A stretch of DNA of 63,256 nt, filler included, from Perkinsus chesapeaki ATCC PRA-425 (Eukaryota > Protista > Perkinsozoa), in assembly GCA_013115145.1 (NCBI GenBank). It is 8 parts of 8 records of this genome, joined end to end, with 100 filler letters (N's around TTAATTAATTAA, not from the genome) between each part and the next. Parts side by side here need not be neighbours in the genome. Positions count along the whole stretch, not along the records: positions 48,778 to 50,717 come from JAAPAO010001724.1; 7 more parts are not named here. One strand, written 5' to 3'. The translations under genes were made by a program, and so were the position numbers. The first letter of the stretch is position 1, and every line of letters starts with the position of its first letter. This document shows positions 48,659-50,717 of the stretch, piece by piece. A model generated the notes under the pieces. That model was not told the DNA's origin, did no database searches, and saw only the letters and a program-made list of their open reading frames with translations.

Positions 48659-49130
48659 CCGACACTGCAACCAGCTGNNNNNNNNNNNNNNNNNNNNNNN
48701 NNNNNNNNNNNNNNNNNNNNNTTAATTAATTAANNNNNNNNNNNNNNNNNNNNNNNNNNNNNNNNNNNNNNNNNNNNATAATGAAAGTGAAAATGCGCGC
48801 CTCGGACTGGTGCTAGAGGGGAAATTAACAGAATAAAGGGGGAGGAAAAGTCAATCGGAGATGCTGGTCCGCATGGTTTGGAACTCGGCTGAAGTGGCAA
48901 AGGAAGTGCGCGTAATTGGATCAAGTAACGTCAATGTAATACTGGGAAGGGGGGCTAGTAAGTTAGCTTGGAATTAGGCGGAATGCGCAAGTAGTTAGAA
49001 AGTTAGAGGCACTCAAAGTTGGTCGGTGGGGGGTACGTGGAAAATTCGAAATTCGGCCAAGTGCAGGAATTAGATGGCGCGCAAGAATTTAATGCTACCC
49101 TCCCACTGTCTACCTGGACATGTATATGTT

Positions 49131-49212
49131 ACCGTAGCCTATTTGGCTCAAGGTAAATATCAGGTCTGCTCGCTAGGTTGCAGTCGTAAGGCGAATACCA
49201 GTGACGACCTTT
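49131..49212 (+). ncRNA. SL RNA: Spliced-leader (SL) RNA gene with variant 22-nt exon
   Basis: ACCGTAGCCTATTTGGCTCAAG (49131-49152) is followed directly by a GTAAAT donor, a GTCGT/ACGAC stem and T8 at 49210-49217. The ~80-nt length matches published Perkinsus SL RNAs (80-83 nt). Confidence 0.88.
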
Positions 49213-49543
49213 TTTTTGCAAATCAAATTGATTTGCACTCGGTGAAATTGCATTGCAGTTTGAGATAACATCTTTTGAAATTTCATGCAAGTCAATTTCA
49301 CCCCTTGGTCATGAATGAACCCCCGATCCCCCTGGACAATGTTGCTCATCGAACTGCAGAAATACAACATTGTACAAGGGGCGCGGGGATTTCCAACTAT
49401 GCGCTTCAGTGACTTGGCGAGCAAGATAGAGATAGGCAGGGATAAGATGGAGTTGAATGGAATTCGTACAAGTCAAGGAGACTCAGACATATATGGATTT
49501 CAGGATGTATTACAGGAGTATTGTGTAAGTCAATTATTAATAG

Positions 49544-49682
49544 TTGCCTCATGCGAGGCGCCCTAAAAATTGCGATAAGATCCGTTAGAATCTTACGACG
49601 GGAATTGGAGTAGTTTTCAACTAGCAAAAAGCGCATCTCCGCAAGGCGTCATAGATAGCGCTATTGCCCCTCCCGCAAGGAT
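49544..49682 (-). ncRNA. U4: U4 snRNA
   Basis: 5' ATCCTTGCGGGAGGGGCAAT; kink-turn C-TAT-GA-CGC/GCG-GA-G; TTGCTAGTTGAAAAC; Sm site AATTTTTAG; terminal hairpin GCCTC-GCAT-GAGGC. Confidence 0.92.
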
Positions 49683-49833
49683 AGTATGAAATAGCACTGC
49701 AGCCACTTGGCACACTAGGGATATGGCAGAAAGCTGGTAGTATTGAAGGGCATGATAATATAATTTGAAGGGCTTGATAAATTCTTTTGGGGAGATGACT
49801 TTGCTCACACGAGACATTCATTTGACTTGATAG

Positions 49834-49949
49834 TTGGAGCATTGGCTCCGCAAAAATTGTGAAAGTTCACATCAGTGCAGTCATGCCACACGGCAATCTT
49901 TAGTAAAAGGCGAAAGATTGATTCGCTTTGAGATGACCGCTGTGATGCT
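49834..49949 (-). ncRNA. U5: U5 snRNA
   Basis: Invariant loop I region AATCTTTCGCCTTTTACTAAAGATT, long closing stem, Sm site AATTTTTG, 3' hairpin GGAGC-CAAT-GCTCC. Confidence 0.96.
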
Positions 49950-50173
49950 AGTATATGGCGCGGAGAGGAGGACATGTGGATGCCAAGGAGGGGAAGTGCG
50001 GTAATATAAGGGGGGAATTGGCAAATCTTTTGGGACTTTACTTTATGGGCTGGGGTGAAATTTGGGGACTCAGAGGGGAATTATAGGGACTTGGAGGATC
50101 TTTAAAGGTACTTGCATATAATTCAGAGACACCCGTAGGGACTTTTTGGGGCATTATATATATTATTGATTAG

Positions 50174-50348
50174 TTGGTGCCTGCGCTATTTCTTCATTTG
50201 CGCAACGGCACCGCTACCAGAAATTTCGCTGTGGAACCCACACTTGGTGAGCCCTGGAGCTTTACAGTCCTCTGAAGTCGTGCAGTGAGCTGCTCCGCCC
50301 CACGAGAGCGAGCTGCTTGAGCCTCGCCCAACGCCAGCCAGGTAAGTT
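50174..50348 (-). ncRNA. U1: U1 snRNA
   Basis: 5' AACTTACCTGG; loop II CACTGCAC (U1A site); stem III CTCAC-CAA-GTGTGGG; Sm site AAATTTCTGG; stem IV GGTGCC..TGCGC/GCGCA..GGCACC. Confidence 0.94.
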
Positions 50349-50547
50349 ACCCTTAATTATCCCCAGAGGTAACTTCTGGTAGTGTACTTGTATGAAATGT
50401 GGTAAAATATATGAATATAATTGTAAAAATTTACCATTCTTCGGACATCCAGTATTCTCGTGAGGCATTTCTGGGGAACTAGAGGGCACCCAAACCGGTC
50501 CTATTTCCGAGTCGCTGAATGAATGTGATTCATAATTTAATTATCGG

Positions 50548-50717
50548 TTGCCTCAGAGAGGCTTGGGTCCGCCACACTTGACGAAAAGTGCAAGGCCAAG
50601 GCGACAGTTGAGTTGAGGCCCGATCTGGGATCAAGGCCGTCTACTCCCCAGCAAAAAATTGTTGTGACAGTTCTAGCAAGCAGTAGCTTGCATATGAGTT
50701 GTCACACTCATAAGAAC
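50548..50717 (-). ncRNA. U2: U2 snRNA, 5' end (branch-pairing region) lost in the gap
   Basis: GTTCTT then stem IIa ATGAG-TGTGACAA-CTCAT; IIb GCAAGC-TACT-GCTTGC; IIc complement TGTCACA; Sm site AATTTTTTG; loop IV TTGCAC. Confidence 0.88.

Follow-up and report, generated by a model that had tools for sequence, protein, structure and literature searches.

The window is a stretch of 63,256 nucleotides of DNA from Perkinsus chesapeaki ATCC PRA-425, joined from eight parts, one of which (positions 48,778 to 50,717, from JAAPAO010001724.1, here called the piece) carries a spliced-leader (SL) RNA gene together with the genes for four spliceosomal snRNAs (Table 1). The snRNA genes form a series on the minus strand in the order U2-U1-U5-U4. 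The SL RNA gene is on the plus strand and converges on this series, and its 3′ end (49217) faces that of U4 (49547). The two facing ends are separated by a stretch of 330 nt, referred to here as the slot, which comes next after U4 in the minus-strand series and harbours a long imperfect hairpin.

The terminal T-run of the SL RNA gene was located at 49210-49217 by reading the sequence, and the gene folds with a z-score of -3.0. Its exon, ACCGTAGCCTATTTGGCTCAAG, differs from the L-type leader of P. marinus at three positions and from the dinoflagellate consensus at two, and this exact variant, ACCGTAGCCTATTTGGCTCAAG, had no match in the searchable literature. The SL RNAs of P. marinus are 80-83 nt long and have poly-T tracts at their ends (PMC3101222), and both the length of the present gene up to its T-run and its poly-T end fit this description. 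Contigs of P. marinus on which SL, U4 and U2 occur side by side, AAXJ01000505 among them, are listed in the same study. A stem with a G-rich and a C-rich side and a loop of about 60 nt (49025-49108 on the plus strand, -34 kcal/mol, z -2.7) surrounds a GCCAAGT box upstream of the SL RNA gene.

Table 1. Genes, hairpins and sequence elements of the SL RNA/snRNA unit in the piece.
Feature	Position	Strand	Basis and remarks
U2 snRNA gene	50562-50717	minus	Rfam; truncated by the end of the piece
U1 snRNA gene	50174-50349	minus	Rfam, 67.5 bits (cut-off 69.5), E 4e-16
U5 snRNA gene	49837-49947	minus	Rfam, 76.6 bits
U4 snRNA gene	49547-49682	minus	Rfam, 99.8 bits, E 6e-23
SL RNA gene	49131-49217	plus	22-nt exon, GT donor, two stem-loops, terminal T8
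Imperfect hairpin, 78 nt	49316-49393	minus	repeat search and RNA folding
Arms of this hairpin	49318-49344 and 49365-49391		loop 49345-49364
Second hairpin	49241-49302		17-nt arms, 88% complementary, 28-nt loop; z -3.8 (minus), -4.8 (plus)
Third hairpin	49217-49237		perfect 10-bp stem; abuts the T-run ending the SL RNA gene
CAACTAT after the imperfect hairpin	49394-49400	plus	same heptamer follows the U4 and U5 terminal stems
U4-like proximal box GCCAAGTcaCTGaAGcGC	49401-49418	minus	14/18 identical to 49694-49711 upstream of U4
Upstream region, apparent paralogue of U4 upstream	49394-49471	minus	local alignment
Predicted first transcribed base, A of ATCC	49390	minus	by analogy with the U4 start, ATCC at 49682
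TTATATT before U4	49757-49763	minus	about -81
TTATATT before U5	50003-50009	minus	about -62
TTATATT before U1	50414-50420	minus	about -71
CAACTA at the U4 3′ end	49541-49546	minus
CAACTA at the U5 3′ end	49831-49836	minus
CAACTA at the U1 3′ end	50171-50176	minus

The hairpin and its U4-like upstream region

The original prediction had placed a hairpin RNA at 49300-49392 on the minus strand, downstream of U4 at the normal spacing of the array. Repeat search and folding do place a hairpin there, at 49316-49393, and the spacing agrees as well: 156 nt from the 3′ end of U4 to position 49390, compared with 154 nt from U5 to U4. In the repeat search, the two arms of 27 nt each are 81% complementary and 20 nt apart. 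As RNA, the minus strand forms 22 Watson-Crick and two G-U pairs, interrupted by one 2x2 and one 1x1 internal loop, with a folding energy of -41.0 kcal/mol (z -6.2) that none of 200 shuffled sequences equalled, and a sliding scan showed it to be the most stable 90-nt window in the piece, above every snRNA gene. The plus strand folds at -32.7 kcal/mol (z -5.3). This difference of 8 kcal/mol goes together with two stem imperfections of the transition type. Read as minus-strand RNA they are G-U pairs, and read as plus-strand RNA they are C-A mismatches, a weak strand signal toward minus. The hairpin also has the shape of a pre-miRNA (60-80 nt with a stem of at least 22 bp), which is a matter of shape and not evidence of processing.

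The remainder of the slot is structured too. The interval from 49217 to 49393 folds as three hairpins, and a 201-nt stretch of the slot gives z-scores of -6.6 (minus strand) and -6.4 (plus strand). The true spacers of the piece (48778-49097, 49394-49537 and 49698-49817) show a plus-strand GC skew of +0.35 to +0.5 and have hardly any structure on the minus strand, with -2 to -10 kcal/mol per 90 nt. The GC skew of 49218-49393, in contrast, is about zero or negative, resembling that of the SL and U4 genes, and the spacer type of skew starts again immediately past the hairpin. Lacking a strong skew and folding strongly, the slot thus appears not to be an ordinary spacer. Spacer GC skew could mask non-gene stretches when genes are sought in arrays of this kind.

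What precedes the hairpin on the minus strand resembles what precedes U4. A U4-like box, identical at 14 of 18 positions and at nearly the same distance as its U4 counterpart, had been noted originally and is borne out: 49401-49418 corresponds to 49694-49711, and the distance from the end of the box to ATCC is 11 nt here and 12 nt at U4. When random 60-nt flanks of spacer composition were generated, a match of 14/18 to the U4 upstream sequence arose in 0.8% of trials at any offset and in 0.05% at a concordant offset (within 3 nt). As judged by alignment, the likeness is stronger than this box had indicated (about 65 nt, p about 0.005): it runs from about -74 to -4 of the hairpin and from about -71 to -6 of U4 and reaches a score of 31, where the null mean is 18.8 (p 0.003-0.005). 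This pair came out on top of 15 pairwise comparisons of upstream regions, with the pairs U4-U5 and U5-U1 at p 0.02-0.03. The alignment places the upstream region of the hairpin in a family of promoter-bearing spacers, with that of U4 as its nearest relative. The likeness consists of conserved blocks between diverged stretches and does not look like even decay.

It does not continue into the hairpin itself. The best local score of the hairpin body against U4 is 21 (p 0.09) and no match to the U4 covariance model was obtained, so that a U4 pseudogene or a decayed U4 copy was rejected as the source of the body; the U4-like upstream region therefore leads into a sequence other than U4. Nor are the upstream elements shared evenly among the genes of the unit. 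The piece has three copies of GCCAAGT, one ahead of U4, one ahead of the hairpin and one 75 nt ahead of the SL RNA gene, and none ahead of U5 or U1; as far as the sequences of these genes tell, the U4-like box is not a general snRNA promoter element. The heptamer TTATATT is present exactly three times in the piece, always on the minus strand upstream of an snRNA gene, and at the position equivalent to that of U4 (-81 to -75, 49465-49471) the hairpin has TTGTACG, which matches it at 4/7 positions. The distances of TTATATT from the snRNA starts differ in steps of about 10 nt, and copies spaced in this way would all face one side of the helix. The idea of a novel RNA driven by an snRNA promoter has accordingly fared in two ways: it is strengthened by the longer alignment with the sequence upstream of U4 (p about 0.005) and weakened by the restricted occurrence of the box and the degenerate TTATATT.

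The explanation that we put forward, a tentative one that falls somewhat short of probable, is that a small RNA gene, X, lies on the minus strand with a diverged U4-type promoter and encodes a non-Sm hairpin RNA. X would be the fifth member of the series U2-U1-U5-U4-X, its promoter being a diverged paralogue of the U4 promoter, and the machinery that starts U4 at ATCC would start X at A49390. The hairpin would then make up either the whole body of a small non-coding RNA or its 5′ domain, and the first 75 nt or so of this RNA would fold into the imperfect stem with the 5′ end buried in the helix. Its transcript might end near 49316, or at about 49217 after two more hairpins, meeting the end of the SL RNA gene. 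The U4-type ATCC lies 1-3 nt from the base of the stem, a coincidence that counts for X, since an unrelated palindrome would not require it. The gene-like spacing after U4, the gene-like base composition of the slot and the greater stability of the minus-strand fold count for X as well. An Sm site (like AAUUUUUGG, A-U-rich and single-stranded before a 3′ stem) was found neither in the sequence nor in the folds of the minus-strand RNA, and X would thus not form an Sm snRNP. It may instead act as a structured hairpin RNA, for example as a protein-binding stem or as a small-RNA precursor.

Strand clues and the convergent junction

The snRNA genes of the piece end in a common manner: the terminal stem is followed directly by CAACTAT (U4 and U5), CAACTAA (U1) or CAACCGA (U2). 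CAACTA is found five times in the piece, where about one is expected: at the 3′ ends of U4, U5 and U1, once antisense inside U4, and once past the hairpin on the plus strand. A terminal stem plus CAAC also ends most of the U1, U2 and U4 genes in eight related marine metagenomic loci, and CAAC(U/A) after a terminal stem is a candidate for a conserved snRNA 3′-end signal of the lineage. Related loci in which CAAC(U/A) was seen after snRNA terminal stems include L074, L051, L106, L081 and L112. On the minus strand, the sequence past the hairpin is CATTCAT, with no CAAC. The two best single clues, the U4-like upstream region and the CAACUA signature, thus favour opposite strands.

How should the plus-strand signature be understood? 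It could mark the end of a plus-strand RNA of about 176 nt (49218-49393 and a short tail), in which the hairpin would be the 3′-terminal stem, followed by CAACUAU. Such an RNA would begin right after the T-run of the SL RNA gene and would possibly be cut from a common SL-X precursor. It would account for one CAACTA site past the hairpin where three of the five abut the terminal stems of U4, U5 and U1, and would accord with the stem plus CAAC that terminates snRNA genes in the eight related loci, with the fold of the 201-nt stretch on this strand, and with the fact that the stretch from the SL RNA gene to the hairpin lacks the skew of spacers; weak U-rich, Sm-like stretches, AUCUUUUGA and AAAUUUCAUG, are also present on the plus strand, inside the loop of the second hairpin. 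Its start would coincide with the SL RNA terminator, however, leaving no room for an upstream promoter, and the only TTATATT or GCCAAGT box that precedes it on the plus strand is the SL gene's own. Its stem would contain the two C-A mismatches and be 8 kcal/mol weaker. The signature itself also departs from the snRNA pattern, as CAAC begins 3-6 nt beyond the last pair of the hairpin, whereas it directly abuts the stem in the snRNAs, and the flank beyond CAACTAT is GC-rich, whereas those of the four snRNAs are AT-rich. We regard a plus-strand RNA as quite improbable.

The location of the slot, bounded by the 3′ end of the SL RNA gene (49217) on one side and that of U4 (49547) on the other, raises another possibility. 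This is the only convergent junction of the unit, and a barrier located there, made up of the three hairpins and acting on DNA or co-transcriptionally, could stop or process read-through from the SL or U4 gene before it enters the other in antisense, without giving rise to a stable RNA. Read in this way, the plus-strand CAACTAT past the hairpin would repeat what is found past the terminal stems of U4 and U5. Related loci show long gaps at the switches of orientation between SL and snRNA genes and are enriched in spacer hairpins, many of them located 80-140 nt before SL genes and several then followed by T-runs. One of these gaps, in L074, contains a U3-like gene and no barrier, however, and at most TTT is found beyond the big hairpin on either strand (against T5 or more); having no T-run on either strand, the big hairpin is not of the relatives' hairpin plus T-run terminator type. 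A barrier also leaves both the U4-like upstream region and the U4-type start at the base of the stem unexplained. It thus appears to be an unlikely explanation, although not a far-fetched one.

Palindromes in related loci

Loci of marine relatives provide the background against which the hairpin is to be judged. The comparison set consists of 120 loci from metagenome contigs, found by the SL exon pattern, and many of them are compact arrays of SL, U1, U2, U4 and U5 genes, often with U3, SRP RNA, 5S or tRNA genes as well. In several relatives the slot after U4 is filled by SRP RNA or U3; in the present slot, both were rejected, as their models gave no match and the slot is too short. When the same SL pattern was applied to bacterial and archaeal genomes, it matched twice (L121, and L122 on the chromosome of a bacterial MAG), L121 being a chance match in a bacterial protein-coding gene and not an SL locus; a viral contig collection gave no match.

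Neither the hairpin nor the slot as a whole had a BLAST match in the 120 related loci, and no significant homologue of the slot was found in them by BLAST, profile or covariance model. A covariance model made from the single hairpin sequence did match L032 (848-933, 29.7 bits) and L102 (1090-1218, 17.9 bits). Both were rejected as homologues: they are spacer palindromes, and what they have in common with the hairpin is one 8-mer, a short word in the loop and arms rich in GC. When a profile was made from the relatives alone, its only match in the piece was the 8-mer (E 0.14 and 0.22), and the arms were not recovered. The L032 match is a near-perfect palindrome between copies of the SL gene and shares AUGUU.UAUUUCUG on the 5′ side of the loop. 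Members of the L102 family (L102, L021, L031 and L044) share an inner 8-bp helix, CAATGTTG/CAACATTG, and C-rich and G-rich outer arms, but their loop of about 62 nt is unrelated to the 20-nt loop of the hairpin. Their arm motif is also present as unpaired direct repeats, and in some copies the second arm is missing, which points to repeated DNA rather than to a conserved RNA stem. Like the hairpin, these elements are long and imperfect and have SL RNA genes no more than a few hundred bases away. On sequence comparison, the L032 and L102-family elements are look-alikes at most.

Such palindromes are common in these loci. Across 353 kb of related loci there are 70 inverted repeats with arms of at least 16 nt, where shuffled sequence gives 1-6, an enrichment of spacer palindromes of about 20-fold, and one cluster of them is centred 80-140 nt upstream of SL genes. 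A T-run follows 8 of 60 spacer hairpins in the relatives. Arms of up to 72 nt, often perfect, were observed (L008:1252-1376, L031:943-1089 and L067:6009-6206). With palindromes about 20 times commoner than chance, a hairpin by itself is weak evidence of a gene. Proximity to a promoter does not settle the matter: in L051, at about 2030 on the minus strand, the U4 promoter fragment is present a second time, and this extra copy, 87 nt upstream of the genuine one, leads into AT-rich sequence without a gene. A spacer hairpin flanked by a promoter-like stretch is thus, in view of this duplicate and of the palindrome base rate, no proof of a gene.

The slot might accordingly be thought of as a relic without function, left by the duplication of a U4 unit or of its promoter spacer, in which the gene body was lost and spacer palindromes now stand in its place; the U4-like box would then reflect common descent only. 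The gene-less promoter duplicate of L051 is a direct parallel, the equivalent of TTATATT before the hairpin is mutated at three of seven positions, and both the abundance of inverted repeats and the fact that the covariance-model matches turned out to be spacer palindromes fit a relic. A relic would be expected to look like the neutral spacer of the piece, yet the slot is structured and lacks the strong skew; the resemblance to the sequence upstream of U4 persists in separate blocks and has not decayed evenly; and the coincidence between start and stem would have to be accidental. We give this explanation little probability.

Several further features of the related loci were observed. Elements specific to each lineage, such as ACGGCTT, GACGGY and TGTAATAT, lie at a constant distance, about -55, from U1, U2, U4, U5 and U3 (L074, L051, L081 and L070), and an extra copy of the element in L074, at 1406 on the minus strand, precedes a U3-like 5′ end outside the listed Rfam hits. 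In L074, L051, L034, L062, L032 and others, SL RNA genes are located within the rDNA intergenic spacer that separates the large-subunit from the small-subunit rRNA gene; the rDNA spacer of L074 and L051 also carries U1, U2, U4, U5 and SRP RNA genes, and that of L051 U3 too. In L026, L037 and L060, dozens of tRNA genes are packed with U6 and 5S genes. In L005, L028, L034 and L089, the rRNA strand carries a conserved word, CAACATTGAAA, whose distance to the 5′ end of the small-subunit rRNA downstream is fixed at about 415 nt; from its position, CAACATTGAAA may be the start or an upstream terminator of rRNA transcription.

Classes of small RNA and known systems

Which class of RNA, if any, does the hairpin represent? 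It had originally been matched to none of U6, U11, U12, U4atac, U6atac, SRP RNA and U3, and covariance searches agree: Rfam cmscan of the piece with E up to 10 yielded no family in the slot and no snRNA model on 49200-49400, and the best match of the hairpin, mir-103, is at chance level (20.5 bits against a cut-off of 59.6, E 0.13). ARAGORN found no tRNA in the piece. As for type-2 signals of RNA polymerase III, no T4 run is present downstream on the minus strand, and the only B-box-like word, GTTCGAT, lies in the loop. For a box C/D snoRNA, the slot offers at most partial, misordered look-alikes of boxes C and D and no Rfam snoRNA match. The hairpin cannot be a guide of the H/ACA type, since its internal loops are 2x2 and 1x1 at most, and reading of the sequence found neither ANANNA nor ACA at the proper positions. 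Three spurious ORFs over the slot and U4 had no match in the protein collection.

Mobile elements were also considered. A MITE or foldback insertion was rejected because there is no direct duplication at the arms (ATGAATGA compared with TCCAACTA) and no second copy in the piece or the 120 loci. Dada elements have no TIRs, produce a duplication of 6-7 bp and target tRNA genes in P. marinus (PMC3706591); an insertion of this kind was rejected for want of a target duplication and of more copies in the piece or the 120 loci.

A function in guiding or partnering the RNAs of the unit was likewise rejected. Complementarity of both strands of the slot to SL RNA, U4, U1, U2 and U5 (the last without 49889-49925, in its conserved loop region) is within the range of shuffled sequences, duplex energies being no better than those of shuffles. 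The suggestion that the hairpin is an SL-associated guide similar to SLA1 or SmY gains no support, given this result and the lack of an Sm site between stems and of an H/ACA pocket or box. Together, the lack of an Rfam or tRNA match, of an Sm site and of a significant homologue in the 120 loci, the sequence TTGTACG in place of TTATATT and the CAACUA on the plus strand argue against a standard snRNA gene.

The original prediction had lacked evidence on both sides: the extended U4 upstream likeness, which speaks for an RNA gene, and the convergent SL gene, the degenerate TTATATT, the 3′ signature on the opposite strand and the background of palindromes, which speak against it. The hairpin is a sound lead rather than a surprise. 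A fuller version of the preferred explanation, in which X is a lineage-specific non-Sm hairpin RNA co-transcribed with the snRNAs from a U4-type promoter and has a role in trans-splicing or snRNP biogenesis, or is a source of small RNA, seems doubtful; it would mean that an alveolate produces a hairpin RNA by way of an snRNA promoter.

In perkinsids and dinoflagellates nearly all mRNAs are trans-spliced, and we know of no accessory RNA of this process besides SL RNA and the canonical snRNAs. Should X exist, a discrete RNA transcribed within the SL/snRNA unit from a promoter of the U4 type, it would be a clear candidate for such an accessory RNA. Even if the hairpin is an element of the junction, the cis-signals of the unit, namely TTATATT, the GCCAAGT box associated with U4, X and SL, and CAAC(U/A) after terminal stems, can help annotation and the design of expression vectors in the lineage.

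The system most similar to the putative X is the U4 gene of the same array. The two are alike upstream over about 65 nt, in which the GCCAAGT...CTG.AG.GC box occupies -29 to -12; they also begin with the same four bases, ATCC, and have an equal length of the spacer to the preceding gene. X differs from U4 in its unrelated body, which has no U4-type 5′ stem-loop and no Sm site, in having no CAACUA past its last minus-strand stem, and in having TTGTACG in place of TTATATT at -81. Among small RNAs tied to SL trans-splicing, SmY of nematodes has an Sm site between two stem-loops, and SLA1 of trypanosomatids has a single-hairpin H/ACA pocket and a terminal box. X resembles them in its genomic company only, beside an SL RNA gene and spliceosomal snRNA genes: it has neither the Sm site between two stem-loops of SmY nor the single-hairpin H/ACA pocket or terminal box of SLA1, and its complementarity to SL RNA is not above that of shuffles. 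A different parallel is provided by the HSUR-miRNA genes of Herpesvirus saimiri, snRNA-type units that deliver pre-miRNA-like hairpins. X is like them in combining an snRNA-like upstream region with an adjacent hairpin of about 75 nt whose stem exceeds 22 bp; in the viral genes the hairpin comes after an Sm-class RNA and its 3′ box, whereas that of X would begin at +1.
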